NCBI GenBank assembly: GCA_965644295.1
Contig: CBFFRP010000168.1
Location: 58,640 to 122,639, forward strand
DNA: 64,000 bases
Direction of reading: 5' to 3'
Source: Paraphysomonas bandaiensis
Taxonomy: Eukaryota; Protista; Chrysophyceae
Shown here piece after piece: positions 43,773 through 61,306 of this stretch; position 1 is the stretch's first letter; each line of letters starts with the position of its first letter. A model generated the notes under the pieces. That model made no database searches. It was given only the letters and a program-made list of their open reading frames with translations, and had not been told where the DNA came from. The position numbers and the translations under genes are program-made.

Positions 43773-45796
43773 TCAGATGTCATAGTCGCTCAAATCATCC
43801 AGTATAGAGTAGAATGTTTCGTCGAAAAGTGTTTCGTAGAAAAGGCTACTCCATCTTCCGGTTTCCGCTGTATTTTCATTTTCGTCAGATGAACATGATT
43901 GGCATCGAATGTTATTTGTCACATTCACCGAATTCATTCCATCGTTTATTTCTTTCCCAGAATTATTATATTTAGAGCGTTTATTATTGGTTTTGTTTTC
44001 TTTAATTCGCAACACGTCATTTTCTTGTGTGCGATTTTCATCAATTAGTAAAAAATCATTCTGCTTGCGCTTGGTATGCCTCACAGGTGTGCGATGCAAT
44101 TCAAATTCAGAGGAGAATGCTTGGTTGAATGAGTTACTCCCAATTTCGGTTTTCATTGTAGATTCTAATTCGTCAGATGAGGATGAGTTACTCCCACTTT
44201 CGGATTCCACTAAAGTTTGGTCTTCGTCAAATGAAGTAGAAGAGTGTAGACGGATAGTGTTAGAGTTGTAGTCGCCCATATCATTCAGTTCAAATCCAAA
44301 AGCAAATGTTAGGTTGGATGAGATATTCCCATTTCTGGTTTCCACTGTAGTTTGGACTTCAGATGAAGCAGAAGAGTATTCAAGGATACTGTCAAAGTCA
44401 TTGCCGCTAAAACCATCCCGTTCAAATCCAAAGGAGAATGTTTGGTGGGATGTGTTACTCCCACTTTCGGTTTCCACTGAAGTTTGGTCTTCGTCAAATG
44501 AAGTAGAAGAGTGTAGACGGATAGTGTTAGAGTTGTAGTCGCCCATATCATTCAGTTCAAATCCAAAAGCAAATGTTAGGTTGGATGAGATATTCCCATT
44601 TCTGGTTTCCACTGTAGTTTGGACTTCAGATGAAGCAGAAGAGTATTCAAGGATACTGTCAAAGTCATTGCCGCTAAAACCATCCCGTTCAAATCCAAAG
44701 GAGAATGTTTGGTGGGATGTGTTACTCCCACTTTCGGTTTCCACTGAAGTTTGGTCTTCGTCAGATGAAGCAGAAGAGTATTCAGGGATACTCTCATAAT
44801 TATCGTCGCTCAAATCATTCAGTACAGATCCAGAGGAGAATGTTTGGTGGCATGTGTTACTCCCACTTGCGGTTGCCACTGTGGATTCTATTTCGTCAGA
44901 TGAACTTGATTGGTGTCGAATGCCATTTTCTTGTGTAAAATTTTCATCATTTTGAGTTCTTGATCTACTGGGCCTGTTCATCACGGTCATGGGAGGCAAT
45001 TCTGTAGGTCCAACGCCAGAGCATTGAGCCACAATACGAACCACAACATTTTTCTGAGGAACTTGTTTATTAGACCCCGTCTTTATTGGCTCCACTCTGA
45101 ATTGCATAGTGCACTTCCCATTTCTAAGAGGTACTTGTTTGTCTGATTTAACCACAGTTCTCTCGGTATCGTTGCATTGAGCACTGCACAGCACGCCTTC
45201 GAGCGACGTATCATTTATCGCATTTCCACTCTTATCTTTGGTACTGACATCGACCGTGATGCAATTTGTCTCGTTTTTTGTATAAAACACGCGCGAAATG
45301 TCTCTGATGTTATCAACATGTAGTTTTGCCCGTATGACGCGATATGTTCTGCATGACTCACAACTCAGGCGGCCATCGATGGTCCTCGCACGTATACGAA
45401 AACTCCTGCCAATAGTCTTTACTGTAACGGGAAACTCAACATAACCTTCAGGGGGAATGGTTGCACTTCGTGTCTCTTCCATCTCCTGTATGTATAGTTA
45501 TATGAGGGAAGATAAGGGTGAGAGAGGTTTGATCCGCACCAGTCTACAGTTCGGATCAGATGCGTCCACAATCTCCACTTCCGTGGGAATACTATCCCTG
45601 AGGAATATACAGTATGAGCATAGTAGCAACAGCAACAGTGTTATATTGATGAGATGCACCTGCTGCGTAGTAAAATGGAGCCTTCCTCTGTGCTTCTGAC
45701 GTGAGACAATTGGACACGAATCGCATCGCCCATAAACACAAACTCCTCTTCATGTGATTCATAACCAGGTGTTGTTATGTTCAGGCCTGTCGTCAT
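43773..45796 (-). CDS. Gene X copy 3, with a different repeat region (two 267-bp units) and an earlier stop
   Basis: Near-identical to copy 2 outside the repeat region and has the same two introns. A local duplication near 43665-43880 gives a stop at 43773-43775. Confidence 0.7.
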
Positions 45797-49803: not shown

Positions 49804-50162
49804 GGTATTTAAGGAGGGTTATGTAGAAACTTGTCCACGACCAGTGAAAGTATCTGTAGAGGTGAGAGAACGAGATTGATGGGCGGTGTGTATGTATATA
49901 TAGAGGTATGTATGAGGGATTACTGAGAATAGAGCAACACACACACTCCACTCAAACATATCCAATAAGATAAGAGTAGATGTTGTTGATTGGATATAGC
50001 GATGTTCATAGTAATACGTACACTTGTATATGAAGAAATTTCTATGATAGTGCTGGTATGTATGTATGTATGTATGTATGTATGTATGTATGTATGTATG
50101 TATGTATGTATGTATGTATGTATGTATGTATGTATGTATGTATGTATGTATGTATGTATGTA

Positions 50163-53100
50163 CGTAGAGCTAAATGATGATTCGGTATAGAAGTCTTCGA
50201 GTGATGGAAATGAAAGTCAACGTGCACATTCGTTTTTGTCACAGTGATTATGTTTTCAGTTATTGTACATGTGTGACTCTGTAGGATACGAGTGAGAGTG
50301 TACAGTAGAACATGATCAGCTGTAGTATTATTGTGTTGTAGGGAGACACCATAATTTTCTATCACTAACGATTTCTGTAGTATTTGCAAAGAGACTTGTC
50401 TTTTGCCTACCTGTAGTGTAGTTTGAACGGAGGACAACGGGCGAACTGGATCCGTGAGTGTTTGATTGATCTGTAGTATCAGTGTTGTATTTTCGATCCA
50501 AGTACGTATTTCTCTACGTGATAGAAAATTATGAAGAAGTCGAGCAACGAGAAGCTCAAGAAGTTTAGGAACAAGGCGTTGGACCAGCGGTCCAGGGGCC
50601 AAGGGGCAGAGGCATTGACCCCAACGGTGCCGATTCTGAAGTATGGGACGAACACCAACCTGGCGGTATTTAAGCAGAAGCTCACAGTGGCCGCCATGAT
50701 GCTATTTGGTGACCTAGCGAGGCTCGTGGAGACCGATGAGTATTATGAACCACCCAAGATAAAGATTGAGGACTACGATCTCGATAATGACCCCCACGGT
50801 CTGAACCTGGAAGAACTTAAGGATGCGAGAAAGACACGCCAAAGGAAGATTGACCAAATGCGTGACAATCGATCAGCTTTCTATGCGTTCATGTATGACA
50901 GACTGAGCAACGAGTCCGTGGACGCGATTAAGCAATTGGAGGAATACGAAGAAATTAACTCCTCCAAGGACCCTCTACTGTTGTGGCTTGCTATCAAGCA
51001 GACTCACAAAACAGCGACGAACTCCAATGTAGGGACCATCATGCGTGCAGAAACGAGAAAGAAGTACCAAGATGTGCGTCAGGGTCCATTTGAGAGTATC
51101 GTGGCCTATAAGGAGCGTTTCGATTTTCTTTTGGAAGCGTACAATGATATGGAGAATCCGAAGATGGAAGAAGAAGATATAGCTATGGACTTCTTCAGGG
51201 GTCTGGACGACACCAGATATGAGGAGTTTAAGACCAGTTTTATGAATGACTTAATGATGGGGACACAGAAGCCACCCAAGCACGTGAACGAGATCTACAC
51301 TAAAGCTTCGAAGTATATCACCCCGAAGAGAGGAGCGAAACCTAACGGTGGTGTTGCGTTTGTGAGCAGGAAGGACACCTCGACTAAACAACAGCGTCGC
51401 ACAGGTGATGCTGATGACAAGACGAAGTCGAATGGGACCGACGAGTCGAAAGGAAGCGTGCGAAAGCATAGAGGCCCTATTGTATGTTGGGGTTGTGGAA
51501 AGACTGGACACAAGCTAAACCAGTGTCAAGAGAACGTCGAACCAGAGGAGAAACAATGCTCAGTGACTATGCAGAATGCTTTCACATCGGGAGGAGAGCG
51601 TTTCGAATGGTACGAAGTTCTACTAGACAATCAGGCGGATGTGTCCGTTGTGCACCCGTGGCTACTGACAGATGTAAGACCTGCCGATCGTAAGTGTAAA
51701 GTAGCTGGCTTGTCTGGTCACGCAGTAGAACTGCCCAATGTGGGAGAGCTGCCACAATTTTTCACATGTAAAACTGCCGACAACCTACGAGTCAGTGTGC
51801 TATGCCAAGCTGATGTCGAAGACCTGTACCCTATTGTGTACGAGCCAGGAGTGTCATACACGGTGTGTCTACCTAATAGAGAGCTAGTGTTCTACAGACG
51901 GAACAAAATGTATATAGCCGATATGAGGGATTGGGTAACACAAGGCAGGGTAAATATTACGACAACAAGAATGAAAGAACAAGAATACACTAAAAGCGAA
52001 GTGGTGAGAGCTCGGAGGGCGCTGGAACTTGTACGGAACGCGGGTTTCGACTCAGAGCAGGGAGCCATGAACTTTGTGAGCGACGGAAATGTAACAGACG
52101 TGCCGTTGACGGCGCAAGACGTGAGGCGAGCTTTCGACATATACGGGAAGCCTTATGAAGCGGTTAGGGGGAAGACCACTAAACGTAAGAGCGGTAGGCA
52201 GTACGTGGACGTGGGAATCAAAGCAGATCAGCCCAAGCCGCAACGTTTGTATACCGATATATTCAGTGTGAGAAAACAACCGTTCCTGATAACACTGTCC
52301 GAGCCACTGGGGTTGACTCTTGTATCTCCGGTAGCTAGTGAGAAGACTGATGATCTAGGTCTAGCTTTTCAGGAGCAAGTATCTCTACTAAGAAGTCATG
52401 GTTTCGCACCAACTGTAGCCTATCTGGATCCGCAGCCTGGTTTCCAACCCCTCAGAGGACAGATTACAGGGGTGGAAGTAGATGTGTGTGGAGCAGGGGA
52501 TCACATGGACAAGGTAGATCACAAGATCCGGAGACTGAAAGAGACTATTAGATCTGTGCAGGCAGGATTACCCTGGTCACTGCCTGATAACATGGTCAGA
52601 GATCTGGTGAAGTACTCAAACAGTCGCCTAAATATCAGAAGGCCGTCTACAGGCACATCCATAGTAGCGCCACGAGTAGCGTTCACAGGGAGGAAGCCTA
52701 ACTACCGAAAGGAACTAGAGCTAGCATTTGGTGACTACGTGGAGTGCTACAACCCAAAGGTGCGAAGCAACGATGCCGAGCAAAGTCGCACTGAGCCGTG
52801 TATTGCATTGTACCCTACTGGAAATGCCAACGGTAGCTGGCTTTTCATGAATGTGAAGACACACAAGCGAGTGAGAAGGACACACTGGGTGAAAATGAAG
52901 ACAACGCAGCTCATAATTGATGCGATAAATCAGATGGCGAAGATGGGTGATACGACTAGGAAGAGTCAGATTCCGAACCCACTCCTACAGTCGATAGAAG
53001 CAGAAGAGCAGCAGAAAGGCGAAGACATGAAGGAGAGTACGCCAGAGGACGTTAAACAGACTCCAGTTGCGGAAACAATAGTGGAAGATGTATCTACTAC

Positions 53101-55260
53101 TGTGGTTGATGTAGAGCATAGCGGAAACCCATTAGGTGATGACGGTGATAATGAAGGTGAAGTGCCAGAACTTGTCGATGAGGAGCTGGATGACGATGTC
53201 CCAACTATAAAGTCCGGCAGCAGCATTACAAGCAGTGACGAGACAGGCGTTGAGAACGACAGGTCGCCGGATGCGAAGTCGAAACCAGTAGAGTACAGGG
53301 CCTTTCACACGAGTGCGATGAAGGGATTGCGTGAGTATGGTCCATCGGCATATAACGCTATCATATCGGAGCTGAAACAACTTTTGCATGACAAGAAGGC
53401 TATGCGTCCAGTACACCGCAAAGACTTATCGGCAACCCAGTTGAAGAGAGCTATTCGATCTCTGATGTTTCTCAAGACTAAGTATGATGGCTTAGGGCGC
53501 TTCGAAAAGATAAAAGCAAGACTGGTAGCTAATGGCGCACAACAAGATAGGAAGGTGTACGTAGACACATCGTCACCGACAGCAGCGATGCAGTCGATTA
53601 TGATGTGCCTGGCGATAGCTGCTAAAGAGGGACGTCACATAGGTATCATGGATATAGGAGGCGCTTACCTGAACGCCGAGATGTCTGGCGAAGAAGTCAT
53701 AATGGAACTAGAGCCAATGTTAACAACGATATTGAAGAAAGTGGCTCCTGAAGTATCACCGTATGTTGATGAGACTGGTAAACTACTAGTGCGGCTGGAC
53801 AAGGCGCTATACGGTTGCATCCAGAGTGCGAAACTCTGGTACGACACGCTTACAGGATATTTGAGAAGTTTGGGATTCGAGCACAACGCGGTCGACCCAT
53901 GTGTAATGAACAAAGTAGCTGGCGGGCGAAAGTGTACAGTGGTGATATTCGTGGATGACATACTGGTCATGTCAAGCCATAAGGGCGACTACCTAGAGTT
54001 GCTTAAGAAACTGAAAGAGAAGTTTGGGGATGTAAAGCACGACGATGGGAAAGATCTGTCATATCTCGGAATGCACATTAGAGCAGAGGGAGATAAGGTG
54101 ACAGTGTCCATGAGATCGTACATCGAGAATTTTCTACGAGAACACGGAGTGACAGGAACTGCTACATCACCTGCTACAGCTACTCTATTTAAGAACACCA
54201 TGGACAAACCCACTAGTAAGAGTGATAGAAGGAAGTTTCACAAGATGGTGGCTCAGTTGCTGTACCTGGCCAAAAGGGTTAGACCAGACATACTGCTTGC
54301 AGTCGCTTACCTTAGCACGAGAGTCAAGAATCCGACGCATGCTGACATGGAGAAGCTTGGCAGGGTGACCCGCTACCTGAACGCGACTAAGGGACAGGAC
54401 TTGTTGCTGTGCATTGGAAAGAATCTTACCGTTACTGGATACGTCGATGCGGCATTTGGGACTCATGAAGATGGAAAGGGTCATTCGGGTCTGGTCGTAA
54501 AGGTGGGGGATGCAACAGTACTCTGCAAATCGTCGAAACAGCGCATTGTGACACGTGACTCGACGGAATCAGAGTTGGTAGGTCTATCAGATATGTTAAT
54601 GATGATTGTGCAATGTGCAGAATTCATAAAGGAACAAGGATACAGTATTGACGCACCTCGAGTGTTGCAAGACAATACCTCGACTCTATCTCTTGTAACG
54701 AAAGGCGGAGGCAAATATCGTACAAAATACCTGCGTGTGAGGCGTGAATTCATCAAGGAAAGGGCAGATGAAGGAAGCATTCAATTGGAGTACTTACCCA
54801 CAAAGATGATGCTGGCTGATGCGTTGACGAAGCCCCTCCAAGGTACTCTGTACAAGTTTATGACATGTGGTATCGTGGGAAACAATACACATGCCACAGG
54901 GGTGCGTAGAGCTAAATGATGATTCGGTATAGAAGTCTTCGAGTGATGGAAATGAAAGTCAACGTGCACATTCGTTTTTGTCACAGTGATTATGTTTTCA
55001 GTTATTGTACATGTGTGACTCTGTAGGATACGAGTGAGAGTGTACAGTAGAACATGATCAGCTGTAGTATTATTGTGTTGTAGGGAGACACCATAATTTT
55101 CTATCACTAACGATTTCTGTAGTATTTGCAAAGAGACTTGTCTTTTGCCTACCTGTAGTGTAGTTTGAACGGAGGACAACGGGCGAACTGGATCCGTGAG
55201 TGTTTGATTGATCTGTAGTATCAGTGTTGTATTTTCGATCCAAGTACGTATTTCTCTACG
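50163..55260 (+). mobile_element. Complete Ty1/Copia LTR retrotransposon (element C1)
   Basis: 356-bp LTRs at 50163-50518 and 54905-55260, apparently identical, with CGTAGAG...CTCTACG termini. 5-bp TSD ATGTA is supported by a 1-nt phase shift of the tetranucleotide tract. Confidence 0.95.
50531..54919 (+). CDS. C1 gag-pol polyprotein (gag-PR-IN-RT-RH), single ORF ending inside the 3' LTR
   Basis: CWGCGKTGHKLNQC knuckle; LLDNQA protease; integrase YTDIF/YLDPQ/VDHKIR; RT KARLVA, DIGGAYL, KALYG, FVDD; RNase H YVDAAF, STESE, QDN, ADALTK. Copia domain order. Confidence 0.95.
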   Translation: MKKSSNEKLKKFRNKALDQRSRGQGAEALTPTVPILKYGTNTNLAVFKQKLTVAAMMLFGDLARLVETDEYYEPPKIKIEDYDLDNDPHGLNLEELKDARKTRQRKIDQMRDNRSAFYAFMYDRLSNESVDAIKQLEEYEEINSSKDPLLLWLAIKQTHKTATNSNVGTIMRAETRKKYQDVRQGPFESIVAYKERFDFLLEAYNDMENPKMEEEDIAMDFFRGLDDTRYEEFKTSFMNDLMMGTQKPPKHVNEIYTKASKYITPKRGAKPNGGVAFVSRKDTSTKQQRRTGDADDKTKSNGTDESKGSVRKHRGPIVCWGCGKTGHKLNQCQENVEPEEKQCSVTMQNAFTSGGERFEWYEVLLDNQADVSVVHPWLLTDVRPADRKCKVAGLSGHAVELPNVGELPQFFTCKTADNLRVSVLCQADVEDLYPIVYEPGVSYTVCLPNRELVFYRRNKMYIADMRDWVTQGRVNITTTRMKEQEYTKSEVVRARRALELVRNAGFDSEQGAMNFVSDGNVTDVPLTAQDVRRAFDIYGKPYEAVRGKTTKRKSGRQYVDVGIKADQPKPQRLYTDIFSVRKQPFLITLSEPLGLTLVSPVASEKTDDLGLAFQEQVSLLRSHGFAPTVAYLDPQPGFQPLRGQITGVEVDVCGAGDHMDKVDHKIRRLKETIRSVQAGLPWSLPDNMVRDLVKYSNSRLNIRRPSTGTSIVAPRVAFTGRKPNYRKELELAFGDYVECYNPKVRSNDAEQSRTEPCIALYPTGNANGSWLFMNVKTHKRVRRTHWVKMKTTQLIIDAINQMAKMGDTTRKSQIPNPLLQSIEAEEQQKGEDMKESTPEDVKQTPVAETIVEDVSTTVVDVEHSGNPLGDDGDNEGEVPELVDEELDDDVPTIKSGSSITSSDETGVENDRSPDAKSKPVEYRAFHTSAMKGLREYGPSAYNAIISELKQLLHDKKAMRPVHRKDLSATQLKRAIRSLMFLKTKYDGLGRFEKIKARLVANGAQQDRKVYVDTSSPTAAMQSIMMCLAIAAKEGRHIGIMDIGGAYLNAEMSGEEVIMELEPMLTTILKKVAPEVSPYVDETGKLLVRLDKALYGCIQSAKLWYDTLTGYLRSLGFEHNAVDPCVMNKVAGGRKCTVVIFVDDILVMSSHKGDYLELLKKLKEKFGDVKHDDGKDLSYLGMHIRAEGDKVTVSMRSYIENFLREHGVTGTATSPATATLFKNTMDKPTSKSDRRKFHKMVAQLLYLAKRVRPDILLAVAYLSTRVKNPTHADMEKLGRVTRYLNATKGQDLLLCIGKNLTVTGYVDAAFGTHEDGKGHSGLVVKVGDATVLCKSSKQRIVTRDSTESELVGLSDMLMMIVQCAEFIKEQGYSIDAPRVLQDNTSTLSLVTKGGGKYRTKYLRVRREFIKERADEGSIQLEYLPTKMMLADALTKPLQGTLYKFMTCGIVGNNTHATGVRRAK

Positions 55261-55414
55261 ATGTATGTATGTATGTATGTATGTATGTATGTATGTATGT
55301 ATGTATGTATGTATGTATGTATGTATGTATGTATGTATGTATGTATGTATGTATGTATGTATGTATGTATGTATGTATGTATGTATGTATGTATGTATGT
55401 ATGTATGTATGTAT

Positions 55415-58400
55415 TGTGGCATGAAACTCCTAGTTTTAGGGCTGGGAGTTTCTTTCCTTCGGGAAACGTGGGGTTTCCCTTCAGGATACGGTAGTCTAGT
55501 GGCTGTAGTTTCATGCCAGACTAGTCATACATGATTCTTATATGCATAATAATCATTATATTCCTAGTCAAGGCCTTTTCTTGTTGTCTCGCGTAGTTCC
55601 ATCACAATATCGATATTTGAACGAATTATGACTAGACGCACGAGAAGTGCTAAGAGAAGTGAGGAAGAGAAGATAGAGGAACGGGTTCAAGAGAAACCCA
55701 TGGCTTCCACCTCGAGGGAGGAGGAGGAAGAGGCAGTAGTCTCTAGTTCGGAGCTTCCAACGCAGAGGGTTGCGGAGGAAGAGTCATTAACTACTCCGAA
55801 TGTGGAGGTAGTGAATGAAGGAAATCAAGGAAATCCAGAGGGGGAGTCTGGATGGGAAGTGGAGACTTGGGCTGCGCTGGGAGAAGCGACAGTCGATGAA
55901 GAGGGTTTGTCACTTCCGCCAAACTCTAGTTCTGAGCGGGAAAGGGTTGACCCGCAGAGTGAGGAGAGAAAGATAAAGATCGCCCGAAAGAGGGAGATTA
56001 GGGAGAAGCTTAGGGAGAATAAGGAATGGGAGGCCTCTAGGGGGGGCAAAGAGTCTCCCAAAGGGAGGGAGGAGAGGAGTTCCTCCGAGGAATTTGAGAG
56101 GTCAGGGAGATCGAGGGAGAGATCTCGTAGTTATTCCGACTCCGGGGGGGAGGAATATGAAGAGCGGGGAAGGTCTCGCAGGCGCTCTTCCTCAAGGAGA
56201 GAGGAGTATTATGAGCGGAGTGGAAGATCGAGAAAGGGACGATCGAGGGATCGAAGTAGTAGATCCTCGGGTAGAAGATCGAAAAGATCTCGTCGCGAAG
56301 AGAGCTCCAGAAGGTTGAGAGCCTCTGAGCTAGAATTGGAAAGTCTGCGGCAAGAGGTGCAGCAGTTAAGGTCGTCGTTGGAGGGGCAGCGTTCGACGGG
56401 AGGGGACAGGTCCGGAGGAGCACCTGCCATACCGCGACAAAGCAGTATAGGGAGGGCAGAGGAAGCTAGCTCGTCCAGTAGTACCCTCCTGGTTACGTCT
56501 AATGACGTTCCTCCATTAGTCGCGCTGACTTATGACGCGGTGGAGGATTATATTGAGAAGTGTCGCCTTTACTTTCACAAGAGTGGTGGGAGAGAGGTAG
56601 ACCGATCGCTAATCTCGGCCAAAATGGCGGCTAAGATAGACTTTATGAGGGGAGACGTTAACGGGAAAGTTGACGACTGGAAGGATCCGAAGGTGTTACC
56701 GTCGGAGGATTTCTATGCGTTCCTTCGTAAGATGGTGAAGGATCAGGGGCATGTGGAGGTAGTGGAACCTTTTCAACATATTCGCGAGTGGGCTCGCGAG
56801 GTTCGCACCTTCCGGAATGTCAAGGATGTTATGGACTGGGGTGCGGACCTCAAGTTGAAATTGGAAAAGGAGGAAGGATCCGGCACATGGGAGGAGAATA
56901 AGGTTTGGATCGAAGATTTCAAACGTTCCCTCCGGATTGATCTTCCGTTCCATGATCAGGCTCGAAGGAACAGATTTCTGACTGAGAAGGTTCAGCCCAT
57001 TTTTGAGAGTTTGTCAGAGGACAAGCGAAATTTGTTGGGTTATTTGACGGCCTTGCACAAAGCCGTTACAGCTATTAGGGATGGCTGGGAGGCTGTGGGG
57101 CCTTTTGACTTATTTGTGGCACGACAGTGGCCCCGAGGATCGATGGGAGGGCGATCCGAGGCAGACCAACGGGATCGGAAGGGGGCCGATCAACGGGAGA
57201 GAAAGCGCACGCATTCACCTGCGAGGAGTTCGCAAGGTGGTTCGTCTAGTGCTGGAAAAGCGACAAAGAGAGCGAAGAGTAGCTCTCAAACGGATGTGTC
57301 GAAAGTGCCAGATTCAGATCGATGCAATGTGTGTGGTCGCCCAAAGGAGTGGCACAAGAGTGCGGAGTGTCCACTTAAGCAAGCTGCGGGGGCGAACTTG
57401 GATCCAAACGTAAAATGGAGAGAGTGTGCAGTAGCTAAGGATATTTTGGCCAAGAGGGGCCAACATACGTTGCCTAGAGAGGGATGGGTCTTAAGGCAAA
57501 GCGGTTCATATGGAAAGGGCTCCAAGGGTGAGTCCCATGATGTGCATTCTGATGTTATGGCTATTATGGCCCTTAAGTCTTTTTCTTCATTGCCGTTCAT
57601 AACGGTTGTTGTATGCAATGAACAGGGAAAGAAAAGGACATGTAAAGCTCTACTGGATACGGGCGCGTCGGCTAACTTCATCAGTAAGAATGTAGCTGAA
57701 TGGTTAGTAGATAGTGGTTCTATTCCTATTCCCGTAAGTAAGAATATCGCTGGGGGTTTTAAATCAGCAAGTGCTTTGTGTGAGAGGGGTGTGTCCCTCA
57801 ATGTAGAGATCTTTACGGAGGTAAAGGAACCTCCAGTGTTGCAAGCTCGCATAGATGCATGGGAGTTAGATCTAAATTTTGAATTGATTTTAGGGGTACA
57901 TACTGTACGTAATTTAGATTTAGTAGTGCAGTGCCCTAGTGCTTTCATGAGCTCAGATAAGGCTCGAAGGGTAGCCGACGTAGTGGGAGACAGTGCATTC
58001 CCTCTTGCGAGAGAGAGAGATGATCAGTCCGGGGGAGCAGTGTCTCCGAGCCTTGGCGTGCACGCGTCTTACCCTTGTGGGGGGGAACGAGCCAGCGTTC
58101 GTCTTCCATTGCGTAAAAATTATAACCTTGAGGTTCGAGGAAAGTTGGCCCCTCTGGAAGTAGGAATCAGTGACAAAGGGGAGGATTGGTCGTACCCAGC
58201 GGAGGAACAGCTGCTTTCGATGGGAGAAGATCTTTCAAATTTCTCAAAAAGGTCGGCATGGGACCGAGAGGATATGAAAGAAATTCGCAACGATCAGTTG
58301 GAATCCATTGACTCTGATTATCTGGACTCGGAAGGTGAGTCTCCTACAATTCCGGAAAAGGTTTATGGGTCACCGGACTTACAAGAAAAGATTCGTGGGG

Positions 58401-61306
58401 TCCTGTTGAAGTATAAAGACATCTTTCGATTAGAAATTCGGAAGGGAAGACCCGCAAAGTTAGAACCGTTTGAGCTCGAAGTCCGGAACCCGGAGGAAAC
58501 GTGGTTTATACCGGCAAATAAATTGCCTCCTAGGAGGTTGGATAGGAGTCGACAGAGGGAACTCCAGCGTTTAGTGGAAAAGTTAGAGCGGTTGGGAGCG
58601 ATACAACCTAGCTCGGCCACACACTATAGTCATCCTTTTGTAGTACCTAAGCCGAATAATAAGTGGCGTTTGGTGTTGGATTATAAGAATCTCAACAAGG
58701 TTACTACCTCTGAAAGCTGGCCAATTCCGAACATTAGGGATATGATTTATCGGATTGGTGAGAAACGTCCTAAGTTCTTTGTAGTGATGGATCTCACGTC
58801 TGGGTATCATCAGGCGCCAGTGGGCGAGAAGTCCCGTGCCTGGGTCGCCTTTATTACTCAAAACGGGGTGTACGAGTGGCTCCGGCTCCCCATGGGTTTG
58901 AAAGGTGCCCCATCCTACTTCCAGCGGCAAATGCAAAGTGTTGTACTAGCGGGTTTAGTCTATAAGATTTGTGAGATATATCTCGATGATTGTATTATAT
59001 TTGCTAGCTCGGAAGAGGAGCTGATTGAAAATTTATCAGCAGTTTTAGAGAGATTTAAGAAGTTTGGCCTTACAGTTAACCCTAAGAAGTGTGTCTTTGG
59101 GGTCTCAGAGGTAGAGGCTGTGGGTCATAAGATCAATGAGTTTGGTCATACCTTTACTAGAGAGCGGATTGATAGTATATTGGCTATCCCGCGTCCTAAT
59201 ACCCAGAAACAGTTGAAACAGTTCATGGGTGTAGCAAATTTTGTAAGAGATTGCGTACGCGAATATGCACTGATTGCGAAACCATTGCATGCAATGTTGG
59301 GGAATTATACTAAGTCGCAGGCTCGACGTAAGGTGTTGCACTGGACAGAGGAGTCCAGTGTTGCCTTTGATGTGCTAAGGGAGCGCATTCATGAGTGTCC
59401 CTTGTTATTTTTTATGGATGATGTTTCCCCCATCTTCCTATATACTGACGCGTCAATAATTGGTATAGGGGCACACTTGGTGCAAGTCGTGGAGGGTCAC
59501 GAGCGCACGATTGGGATGATTAGTAAGGCGTTCGACTCAACGTTAGCTAAGTGGCACACCTGCGAGCAGGAAGGTTTTGCCATCTTTTATGCATTAAATA
59601 AGTGGGAATACTTGTTGAGGGATCGACGTTTTACGGTTCGAACCGATCACGATAATTTACGTCAACTCAAACAGGAGTATGGCCACATAAAACGAGTGCA
59701 GCGCTGGTTTATGTGTTTTCAGTCGTTTGATATCGTGTTCGAACACCTTCCAGGGGAGATGAATGTGGTGGCTGATGCTCTTAGTCGAGTTTGTGGGGTG
59801 GACGCATCCGACGAGGTCGATGACAATCTGTGTTCTTCTCTCGAGCGGTGCCTGGAGGAAGAGTCGCATACTGAGGATCAGCGCATCCCTAATCACTTCT
59901 GGAAGGCAATTAAGGCTTGTCACAATAGTGTAGTAGGCCACCATGGGGTGGAACGTACAATGGGAAAGTTGCGAAGGAGCAACAATAATTGGAAGAACAT
60001 GCGTCAGCATGTTATACGTTTTATTAAGTGTTGTGTGTGTTGTCAAAAGATGTCAACTATTAAGCCGGCAGTGTGGGTTCGGCCTTTTACTCTATCTAAG
60101 TATTCCATGGGTGAGTGTATCTATATGGATTATATCGAGGGTTTGATTCCCGATGAGTATGGGTATACTAGCATTCTGGTGATGATTGATGCCTTTTCAC
60201 GGTGGGCTGAGTTATTTCCTACCAAGGGTATCTCAGCAAAGGACACGGCACGAGCGTTGTTGCATTATTTTGGCCGATTTTCGATGTGTTCGATTTGTAA
60301 GCTCACTTCAGATAAAGGGAGGGCCTTTATGTCCGATATTGTTCGGGAGGTGAGATCTTTGTTAGGGGTGGAGCACTCCTTTACAGTAGAGTATTCAAAG
60401 GAGGAGAATGGTATGGTTGAGAGGGAGAATAAGGAAATTCTCCGTCATCTGAGGAATATTATTTTCGAGAAAGTGGTCTTGAAAAATTGGTCTGATGTGC
60501 TGCCAATGGTGCAGCGGATTTTGAATGCGGCAATCCATGGGTCGACAGGAGTGGCCCCAGCACAATTAGTATATGGAGATGCCATAAACCTAGATGCAGG
60601 CTTTATTTTAGATAGGAAGAATTTGTCTCCAAGGGAGGAGAAGGATCTGTCCGAGTGGGTGGCAGATAGACTCGCAGCTCAGGAGAGGGTGCGAGTGTAT
60701 GCTCGTCAGAATCTGGAGATTCGGGATCAACACCATATCGAGTCCAATATGCCCGAGGGTGTTTCGTCGTACCCGGTGGGGGCATTTGTGCTAGTGGAAC
60801 ACAGGCATAACTCGTTACGGACAGGTCCAACGAGCAAGTTGTTGCCCTATTTGAAAGGGCCTATGGAGGTGGTTGGTGTGGAAGGACCAATTTACACCTT
60901 GAAAAATTTAGTGTCGAGAGGACAGGCACGGTATCATATATCTAAGCTGCGGCCTTTTTGTTTTGATCCGAGGGTGGATGATCCCGTACAAGTGGCGTTA
61001 CGGGATGACGTTGAGGGTACCAAGTTTGTGATGGAGAAGATTACAAACATGAGGGGCGACCCTAAAGGTTCGCGGTGGGATTTGTTCTTTGAAGTATACT
61101 GGTCAAATTACGATGTTCCGACGTGGGAGTCGTGGAAGACAGTACGAGGAACAGATGCGTTATTGAAGTACTTGAAGACGCACTCTAGTTATACAGTACG
61201 AGCCCTATTACCCAGGAGAGGGAAGAAGCGCTCCAGGTCTCCAGACACGGCGGCAGAGGAAGTCATTTCAAGTGAGGATGAGTCGTCGCAACAGTCAGGA
61301 GTTTGA
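55415..61306 (+). mobile_element. Gypsy-type chromodomain retrotransposon (element G2); putative 5' LTR 55415-55606; no 3' LTR found in the window
   Basis: Starts TGTG immediately after the microsatellite. Putative LTR end ...TCACA at 55606. Intact polyprotein follows. The LTR end is inferred because no second copy is present. Confidence 0.8.
55628..61306 (+). CDS. G2 gag-pol polyprotein (RS/acidic gag, PR, RT, RH, IN, chromodomain), single 1892-aa ORF
   Basis: CNVCGRPKEWHKSAEC knuckle; LLDTGA; WRLVLDY, DLTSGYHQ, PMGL, YLDD; TDAS, TDH, ADALSR; HN...GHHG...CVCC, YMD/SDKG/NGMVER; KGPM; EKITNMRGDP...VYW...TWE. Confidence 0.95.
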   Translation: MTRRTRSAKRSEEEKIEERVQEKPMASTSREEEEEAVVSSSELPTQRVAEEESLTTPNVEVVNEGNQGNPEGESGWEVETWAALGEATVDEEGLSLPPNSSSERERVDPQSEERKIKIARKREIREKLRENKEWEASRGGKESPKGREERSSSEEFERSGRSRERSRSYSDSGGEEYEERGRSRRRSSSRREEYYERSGRSRKGRSRDRSSRSSGRRSKRSRREESSRRLRASELELESLRQEVQQLRSSLEGQRSTGGDRSGGAPAIPRQSSIGRAEEASSSSSTLLVTSNDVPPLVALTYDAVEDYIEKCRLYFHKSGGREVDRSLISAKMAAKIDFMRGDVNGKVDDWKDPKVLPSEDFYAFLRKMVKDQGHVEVVEPFQHIREWAREVRTFRNVKDVMDWGADLKLKLEKEEGSGTWEENKVWIEDFKRSLRIDLPFHDQARRNRFLTEKVQPIFESLSEDKRNLLGYLTALHKAVTAIRDGWEAVGPFDLFVARQWPRGSMGGRSEADQRDRKGADQRERKRTHSPARSSQGGSSSAGKATKRAKSSSQTDVSKVPDSDRCNVCGRPKEWHKSAECPLKQAAGANLDPNVKWRECAVAKDILAKRGQHTLPREGWVLRQSGSYGKGSKGESHDVHSDVMAIMALKSFSSLPFITVVVCNEQGKKRTCKALLDTGASANFISKNVAEWLVDSGSIPIPVSKNIAGGFKSASALCERGVSLNVEIFTEVKEPPVLQARIDAWELDLNFELILGVHTVRNLDLVVQCPSAFMSSDKARRVADVVGDSAFPLARERDDQSGGAVSPSLGVHASYPCGGERASVRLPLRKNYNLEVRGKLAPLEVGISDKGEDWSYPAEEQLLSMGEDLSNFSKRSAWDREDMKEIRNDQLESIDSDYLDSEGESPTIPEKVYGSPDLQEKIRGVLLKYKDIFRLEIRKGRPAKLEPFELEVRNPEETWFIPANKLPPRRLDRSRQRELQRLVEKLERLGAIQPSSATHYSHPFVVPKPNNKWRLVLDYKNLNKVTTSESWPIPNIRDMIYRIGEKRPKFFVVMDLTSGYHQAPVGEKSRAWVAFITQNGVYEWLRLPMGLKGAPSYFQRQMQSVVLAGLVYKICEIYLDDCIIFASSEEELIENLSAVLERFKKFGLTVNPKKCVFGVSEVEAVGHKINEFGHTFTRERIDSILAIPRPNTQKQLKQFMGVANFVRDCVREYALIAKPLHAMLGNYTKSQARRKVLHWTEESSVAFDVLRERIHECPLLFFMDDVSPIFLYTDASIIGIGAHLVQVVEGHERTIGMISKAFDSTLAKWHTCEQEGFAIFYALNKWEYLLRDRRFTVRTDHDNLRQLKQEYGHIKRVQRWFMCFQSFDIVFEHLPGEMNVVADALSRVCGVDASDEVDDNLCSSLERCLEEESHTEDQRIPNHFWKAIKACHNSVVGHHGVERTMGKLRRSNNNWKNMRQHVIRFIKCCVCCQKMSTIKPAVWVRPFTLSKYSMGECIYMDYIEGLIPDEYGYTSILVMIDAFSRWAELFPTKGISAKDTARALLHYFGRFSMCSICKLTSDKGRAFMSDIVREVRSLLGVEHSFTVEYSKEENGMVERENKEILRHLRNIIFEKVVLKNWSDVLPMVQRILNAAIHGSTGVAPAQLVYGDAINLDAGFILDRKNLSPREEKDLSEWVADRLAAQERVRVYARQNLEIRDQHHIESNMPEGVSSYPVGAFVLVEHRHNSLRTGPTSKLLPYLKGPMEVVGVEGPIYTLKNLVSRGQARYHISKLRPFCFDPRVDDPVQVALRDDVEGTKFVMEKITNMRGDPKGSRWDLFFEVYWSNYDVPTWESWKTVRGTDALLKYLKTHSSYTVRALLPRRGKKRSRSPDTAAEEVISSEDESSQQSGV

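Follow-up and report, generated by a model that had tools for sequence, protein, structure and literature searches.

Structure of the element and its genomic copies

The analysed DNA (hereafter the window) is a stretch of 64,000 nucleotides of the chrysophyte Paraphysomonas bandaiensis (assembly GCA_965644295.1, contig CBFFRP010000168.1, positions 58,640–122,639 of the forward strand), and coordinates given without further indication refer to it. Positions 50163–55260 are occupied by a complete long terminal repeat (LTR) retrotransposon, in which the sequence beginning where the 5′ LTR ends, i.e. the putative primer-binding site (PBS), is exactly complementary to a segment within the same LTR. 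The element is a recently active Copia-type retrotransposon of a young, multi-copy family: at least 15 full-length copies, 97–100% identical, are present in the 62.5-Mb assembly, together with diverged copies that are 81–94% identical. A protein at least 90% identical to its polyprotein was found in MMETSP1103 (taxid 36769, Paraphysomonas). The element comprises the following features, flanked by target site duplications (TSDs).

50158–50162, no strand: TSD ATGTA, left copy, within a (GTAT)n microsatellite; repeated after the 3′ LTR
50163–50518, + strand: 5′ LTR, 356 bp, with termini CGTAGAG...CTCTACG; the flanks of at least 15 copies diverge here
50350–50365, + strand: LTR-internal arm CATAATTTTCTATCAC, proposed RNA 5′ end and self-primer (primer proper about 50350/51–50364), with its edge at a C-A step
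50518–50533, + strand: putative self-complementary PBS, composed of the last LTR base (G), the 12-nt leader TGATAGAAAATT and the gag ATG
50531–54919, + strand: gag-pol, a single open reading frame (ORF) of 1462 aa; ATG at 50531, stop 15 nt into the 3′ LTR
54895–54904, + strand: polypurine-type tract CACAGGGGTG, abutting the 3′ LTR and conserved in relatives
54905–55260, + strand: 3′ LTR, 356 bp, identical to the 5′ LTR, with its own copy of the arm at 55092–55107
55261–55265, no strand: TSD ATGTA, right copy

The limits of the LTRs were set by the TSD ATGTA and by the TSDs of other genomic copies (GGTAG and GCAGT). As confirmed by the TSDs of several copies, the LTRs end in CG...CG (50163–50169, CGTAGAG; 50512–50518, CTCTACG) and not in the usual TG...CA. 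The internal bases adjoining both LTRs are TG (GGGGTG/CG... and ...CG/TGATAG, the slash marking the LTR boundary). The polypurine-type tract is part of the coding sequence, and an overlap of the ORF end with the LTR was also observed in several relatives.

Pairing between the LTR and the sequence that follows it

Positions 50518–50533 (GTGATAGAAAATTATG) are the exact reverse complement of CATAATTTTCTATCAC at 50350–50365 (16 nt, 100% complementary, 152 nt apart). An earlier note on this DNA, made from the sequence alone, had reported this complementarity, and its description is correct to the base. It had also claimed that the element has neither a TGG-type PBS nor room for one, which was borne out by our analysis: no TGG follows the 5′ LTR, and the LTR end (50518) is separated from the ATG (50531) only by the 12-nt leader (50519–50530), which leaves no space for a tRNA-type PBS. 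The 16-bp helix is present in both the minimum free energy (MFE) and the centroid folds, where it closes the whole of the repeat (R) and unique 5′ (U5) region, and an alifold analysis of close relatives retains it with three compensated pairs.

Variation within the family affects one position of the helix, 50358 of the arm, where T or C faces A or G of the PBS. The 15 copies carry six U-A, five C-G, two G-U and two C-A combinations; taken alone, this association of arm and PBS alleles is not significant, and it is confounded by descent.

The length of the pairing was compared with chance in three ways. By our own rough, composition-based arithmetic, the probability of an exact 16-mer complement anywhere in the 356-nt LTR is below 1e-6. 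When the window preceding the ATG was shuffled with its composition preserved, none of 200 shuffles reached the observed length, for the element studied here and for most of its relatives. Finally, in 40 relatives the pre-ATG windows contained an LTR complement of at least 11 nt in 26 cases, versus none of 160 control windows of 45 nt placed inside gag of the same elements (maximum, 10 nt).

Conservation of the pairing in related elements

Relatives were collected by a protein-profile scan of JGI metagenomes (80 more loci) and from further assembly contigs. The nearest ones outside the genome, L031–L033, are marine metagenome contigs with approximately 60% aa identity in pol. They read CATAATTT(T/C)CTCTTAC versus GTAAGAG(A/G)AAATTATG, with 14–16 nt paired, and differ from the window element at three pair positions that are changed on both sides. 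In L032 the ATG is gone, and a 14-nt pairing is still present.

In total, 37 elements (28–60% aa identity), originating from marine and freshwater metagenomes and from a diatom transcriptome, carry exact pairs of 10–17 nt (median 15), the arms being 67–194 nt apart. The paired sequences themselves are unrelated between elements (e.g. CACTAATCGATAATTAT/ATAATTATCGATTAGTG and AGATTATATAAGTAAT/ATTACTTATATAATCT). Thus, the compensatory change across related families that the earlier note had suggested looking for is present both at close range (three pairs) and among 37 families of unrelated paired sequence.

On contigs that hold both LTRs and their flanks, the right arm begins no more than a few bases from where the LTR ends. 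L148 reproduces the geometry of the window element exactly (CG...CG LTR, TSD TTGGT, pairing from the last LTR base), L035 and L073 agree in having the right arm at the LTR end, and in 28 of the 37 elements an LTR-terminal motif (AAC, TAC or ATC) stands before the right arm. What is shown directly is the pairing, its location at the very end of the LTR and its conservation by compensatory change. The CG...CG ends are shared by L031–L033, L148 and L146 and co-occur with a very divergent integrase; TG...CA is the form present in clade members at a greater distance.

The position relative to the start codon is variable. Among relatives, pairing and ATG are separated by anything from −3 to over +200 nt; the ATG is overlapped in approximately four elements only, and in the others the pairing stops 2 to over 200 nt short of it. 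Occlusion of the start codon as a clade-wide switch was rejected on these grounds, and the suggestion of the earlier note that the duplex over the ATG acts as a translation or packaging switch is not supported. Inspection by eye of the region approximately 30 nt upstream of the arms showed no conserved TATA box.

A different arrangement was observed in L149 (assembly GCA_040384245.1, accession no. JAWVHA010005924.1), a tandem array in which the polyprotein gene and a single LTR are repeated; its three genes are 316 nt apart, and a self-complementary pair is located at each junction.

Classical Copia families of the same genome and host tRNAs

The genome of P. bandaiensis contains six other Copia families, whose polyproteins match RVT_2 with 200–235 bits and are also recognized by the Pfam models rve, gag_pre-integrs and SH3_retrovirus. 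In these families the LTR is directly followed by TGGTAGCAGA, TGGCAGCGGA, TGGTAGCGAG or TGGTAGCGGT, i.e. by a tRNA-type PBS (TGGTAGC-type), and in none of the six does the LTR contain a complement of at least 8 nt to the PBS region. In a tree of the reverse transcriptase–RNase H (RT-RH) region, 41 members of the self-complementary group are split from the six classical families by a branch with SH-aLRT support of 100. Among the classical families (L114–L127), several have LTRs with TATT at the start and ATTT or AATA at the end in place of TG...CA; all TATT-start families carry a tRNA-iMet-like PBS (TGGTAGC or TGGCAGC).

The 12-mer AATTTYCTATCA occurs 69 times in the genome. Fifty-one of these sites lie in the LTRs and PBSs of the family, and the remaining 18 are close to chance level (15 in a reversed-pattern control). 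Across the whole genome, none of the sites is located in a tRNA gene predicted by ARAGORN and none coincides with an RF00005 match, which answers a comparison with host tRNAs that the earlier note had proposed: no tRNA gene carries the PBS sequence.

Transcripts and RNA ends

A pyrimidine-A step is present at the left edge of the pairing in 35 of the 37 elements, versus roughly 40% expected by chance (our estimate). This A opens the pairing in 16 elements, is its second base in 10 and directly precedes it in nine. Pyrimidine-A is the usual initiator dinucleotide of RNA polymerase II.

One relative, L151, is represented by a polyadenylated transcript contig in sense orientation. The 3′ end of this contig consists of the arm, 13 nt and poly(A), and at its 5′ end these 13 nt are preceded by the final 3 nt of the arm. 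R of L151 is therefore 16–28 nt long (about the arm plus 13 nt) and its RNA starts no more than 12 nt from the left edge of the arm. The L151 protein belongs to the same 90%-identity cluster as an MMETSP protein of Chaetoceros sp. GSL56. The Logan contig L150 was rejected as a transcript, being a collapsed circle, and L154 is without a 5′ leader.

The earlier note had placed the transcription start site (TSS) near 50350. This prediction gains indirect support from the pyrimidine-A edge and from the start of the L151 contig within the arm; for the window family itself, the start near 50350 is putative.

The contigs obtained for the window element revealed a further type of RNA. They skip positions 53622–53668, 54266–54310, 54377–54429, 54584–54656, 54731–54797 and 50279–50410 (= 55021–55152). 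Since the skipped stretches (45–132 nt), with ends CT..AC, read GT..AG on the minus strand, the contigs mostly represent a multiply spliced antisense RNA that runs through the RNase H/pol region and the LTR. The arm is lost with its LTR intron (50279–50410). Contig depth is higher for the antisense RNA than for the unspliced middle part of the element, and two contigs of MMETSP type, L152 and L153 (99% identity to the element), confirm this RNA and show that it exits the 5′ LTR into a glyoxalase gene, forming a chimeric transcript. The spliced antisense RNA contains no ORF longer than 116 aa.

Polyprotein and superfamily assignment

The following domains were identified in the single gag-pol ORF.

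51482–51529, + strand: gag CCHC zinc knuckle, aa 318–333 (E 0.097, below the Pfam threshold)
51971–53029, + strand: integrase, aa 481–833, with a helical N-terminal domain, an RNase H-fold core and an SH3-like C-terminal domain (AF2 and Foldseek)
53447–54166, + strand: reverse transcriptase of Copia type (RVT_2), aa 973–1212 (105.5 bits, cut-off 31.6), followed by RNase H

In an hhalign comparison, the RT, RNase H and C-terminal part proved colinear with the polyprotein of a classical Copia element from this genome (probability 100, 28% identity). Residues C319, C322, H327 and C332 of the zinc knuckle are invariant or nearly so in 30 relatives.

The integrase (INT) is highly divergent. Its region gave no match to Pfam rve, even at E 10, the gag_pre-integrs and SH3_retrovirus models were also silent on the polyprotein, and an hhalign comparison of the region with a classical Copia element yielded a probability of 0.5%. 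A sequence-profile search against the PDB was likewise unsuccessful, its single match being spurious, and only the fold search succeeded: an AF2 model of aa 481–833, built with an alignment of 20 relatives (pLDDT 85.8), matched the integrases of maedi-visna virus (MVV), prototype foamy virus (PFV), Rous sarcoma virus (RSV) and HIV in Foldseek at E ~1e-10 and probability 1.00. Because the modelled integrase fold (aa 481–833) precedes the RT (aa 973–1212), the predicted domain order, gag(CCHC)–protease (PR)–INT–RT–RH, is that of Copia.

The element thus has the defining traits of Ty1/copia (Pseudoviridae), namely an RVT_2 RT, an integrase located before the RT and LTRs with a 5-bp TSD, while two usual but not strict traits, TG...CA termini and a PBS complementary to tRNA-iMet or a half-tRNA, are absent. 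Its assignment to Copia in the earlier note is upheld by the RVT_2 RT, the integrase fold before it and the colinear RT-RH part.

Proposed priming mechanism and alternative explanations

The best reading of the window element, and one that we hold with good confidence, is self-priming of the kind described for Tf1. As in the Tf1 class, the PBS directly follows the 5′ LTR and matches the element's own LTR, and the pairing is kept by compensatory change. According to the proposed mechanism, the genomic RNA would start at approximately 50350/50351 in the 5′ LTR, and its first ~15 nt would fold back across R-U5 to pair with 50519–50533, with one further base reaching into U5. The RNase H of the element would then nick the RNA where the paired 5′ segment ends on its 3′ side, near 50364/50365, and the released 5′ oligonucleotide would prime minus-strand strong-stop DNA through U5 and a short R. 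Primer extension would begin at 50518, which is the mapped LTR end. For the window family, we infer three parts of this scheme: the arm as the RNA 5′ end, the cut by RNase H and the priming itself.

Several observations weigh against self-priming. The helix of two of the 15 copies contains a C-A mismatch, and the fold of the whole R-U5 region is not unusually stable (z −1.6). Approximately five of 41 full-length relatives are without a convincing pair, mostly where little upstream sequence is present; likewise, the members of the group scored as having no or weak pairing are mostly contigs with little upstream sequence. The classification of pyrimidine-A steps was devised after the data had been seen. 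The public RNA data for the window family are Logan contigs, which are unable to show starts and are largely antisense. Only 3 nt of the arm are present at the 5′ end of the L151 contig, which would also fit a TSS lying as far as 12 nt into the arm; assemblies often miss ~12 nt at the 5′ end of a transcript.

Covariation demonstrates pairing and not priming, and one alternative explanation is that the pairing is a structure of the leader, involved in packaging, dimerisation or control of translation, and that another RNA serves as primer. The helix closes the whole R-U5 region in both folds and covers the ATG in the window family, and the U5:AUG interaction of HIV-1 is a comparable leader pairing. 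However, the 12 nt between LTR and ATG offer no other PBS candidate, the right arm invariably adjoins the LTR end, where U5 is delimited by primer extension, and the classical Copia families of the same genome have their tRNA PBS at exactly that position; moreover, the overlap with the ATG is not conserved. We therefore consider a purely structural role improbable. Still less probable is a self-primer acting in trans, supplied by the 5′ end of a second co-packaged RNA or by the copy of the arm near the RNA 3′ end. The 3′ LTR does contain such a copy, mixed combinations of arm and PBS alleles occur, and sequence alone cannot separate cis from trans; on the other hand, in the sole transcript seen the 3′ copy lies ~13 nt from the poly(A) site, the precedent of Tf1 is intramolecular, and the spacing of the arms (67–194 nt) is conserved in scale.

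The remaining two explanations treat the match to the LTR as incidental or accidental. Binding of a host tRNA or tRNA fragment (cf. the half-tRNA-iMet of copia) would have precedent, half-tRNA priming being classical in several Copia lineages (PMC6317226), but the PBS is wholly different between families and yet always matches their own LTR, it lacks TGG, and its 12-mer is found in no tRNA gene of the genome. A host tRNA primer would not account for the match of each family's site to its own LTR; with no tRNA match and this variation across families, a tRNA or half-tRNA primer was rejected as very unlikely indeed. As for a chance match, AT-rich sequence raises the number of random complements, but none of the 200 shuffles equalled the observed length, the gag control windows did not exceed 10 nt and the pairing recurs in 37 families. 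Chance was rejected on this evidence, and its probability is negligible. Self-priming thus remains the reading that we prefer.

Other features of the locus

The window element sits in a long (GTAT)n microsatellite (50056–50162 and 55261–55410). Directly past the microsatellite starts a Gypsy-type element (ORF 55628–61306, RT-RH-INT), with an imperfect 17-nt hairpin at 55412–55428/55507–55523. Elsewhere in the window, positions 44094–44981 contain three copies of a 267-nt tandem repeat, two of which are 99% identical, with an internal sub-period of 132/135 nt.

Comparison with known systems

To our knowledge, self-primed reverse transcription has been shown experimentally in Tf1 and Tf2 only, and elsewhere it has been proposed from sequence inspection of single genomes. 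The RNA of Tf1 pairs with the PBS through its first 11 nt, and a cut by RNase H between nt 11 and 12 releases the primer (PMC7175516). The window element resembles Tf1 and Tf2 of Schizosaccharomyces pombe, and the Tf1/sushi group of Ty3/gypsy in general, in that the PBS directly after the 5′ LTR finds its complement within the element's own LTR and not in a tRNA, with a fold-back across R-U5. The paired LTR segment is at or near the RNA 5′ end in Tf1, and a corresponding position in the window element is suggested by its relatives. The differences concern (i) the domain order, predicted as PR-INT-RT-RH, with an RVT_2 RT and CG...CG LTR ends, (ii) the length of the pairing, 11 nt in Tf1 versus 10–17 nt in the clade (15–16 nt in the window element), and (iii) cleavage by RNase H, shown for Tf1 and predicted here. 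Because of its Copia order and RVT_2 RT, the element is not a member of the Tf1/sushi group, which is characterized by a Ty3/gypsy RT, the order RT-RH-INT and often a chromodomain.

Within Copia, self-priming has been predicted in silico for the plant Ty1/copia lineage TAR (Neumann et al. 2019, PMC6317226), in a paper that, in its citation of Capy 2005, also attributes self-priming to Houba and Osr-1. TAR elements are similar in being Copia elements whose 5′ LTR contains a complement of at least 10 bp to a region 0–5 bp past the LTR. They inhabit land plants, whereas the host of the window element is a stramenopile protist. The polyprotein of the window element is, in addition, silent to Pfam rve, gag_pre-integrs and SH3_retrovirus, and the evidence for its clade includes cross-family compensation and one transcript. 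This Pfam silence, together with a long branch on the RT-RH tree (41 members of the group and the six classical families), argues for a separate deep lineage, apart from TAR.

Fungal GalEa Copia elements have a Conserved Hairpin Site instead of a PBS and no complementary LTR segment (PMC5445492). They share with the window clade the lack of a tRNA PBS and a conserved structured site at the PBS position, but this site is a local palindrome, whereas the partner in the window clade lies 67–194 nt upstream in the LTR. The diatom CoDiI and CoDiII lineages, described in a paper without discussion of primer-binding sites (Maumus et al. 2009, PMC2806351), are also divergent Copia-like elements of stramenopiles and are abundant in ocean metagenomes; relatives of the window element occur in a Chaetoceros transcriptome, the comparison with CoDi being by description only. 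Full-text searches of the literature yielded no report of self-priming in Copia elements of stramenopiles or other protists.

The earlier note had regarded self-priming in Copia as new, which does not hold in view of the proposals for Houba, Osr-1 and TAR (PMC6317226). The principle is already known and has been predicted for Copia. The present finding is not confined to one element and covers a widespread clade. Its signature, carried by no fewer than 37 families sampled from oceans, lakes and cultured protists, is backed by cross-family compensation, a within-genome contrast and a transcript that bounds R, and it points to self-priming in a whole deep Copia clade of aquatic protists. We would go further only tentatively. 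It is possible, though somewhat short of probable, that self-priming is ancestral and universal in a deep, global clade of Copia elements from aquatic protists (chrysophytes, diatoms and others), where it accompanies an integrase of high divergence and, within one subclade, CG...CG ends, and that it either arose independently of Tf1/sushi and TAR or is a relic of an ancestral state of hairpin priming.

The clade includes a transcribed, young family of many copies whose flagellate host can be cultured, which would allow tests of the mechanism, and it gives annotation pipelines a reason to search for self-complementary PBSs in protist genomes, where elements recorded as having no PBS are common. 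If the proposed mechanism is true, independence of host tRNAs would be a recurrent solution, reached in both superfamilies of LTR retrotransposons.

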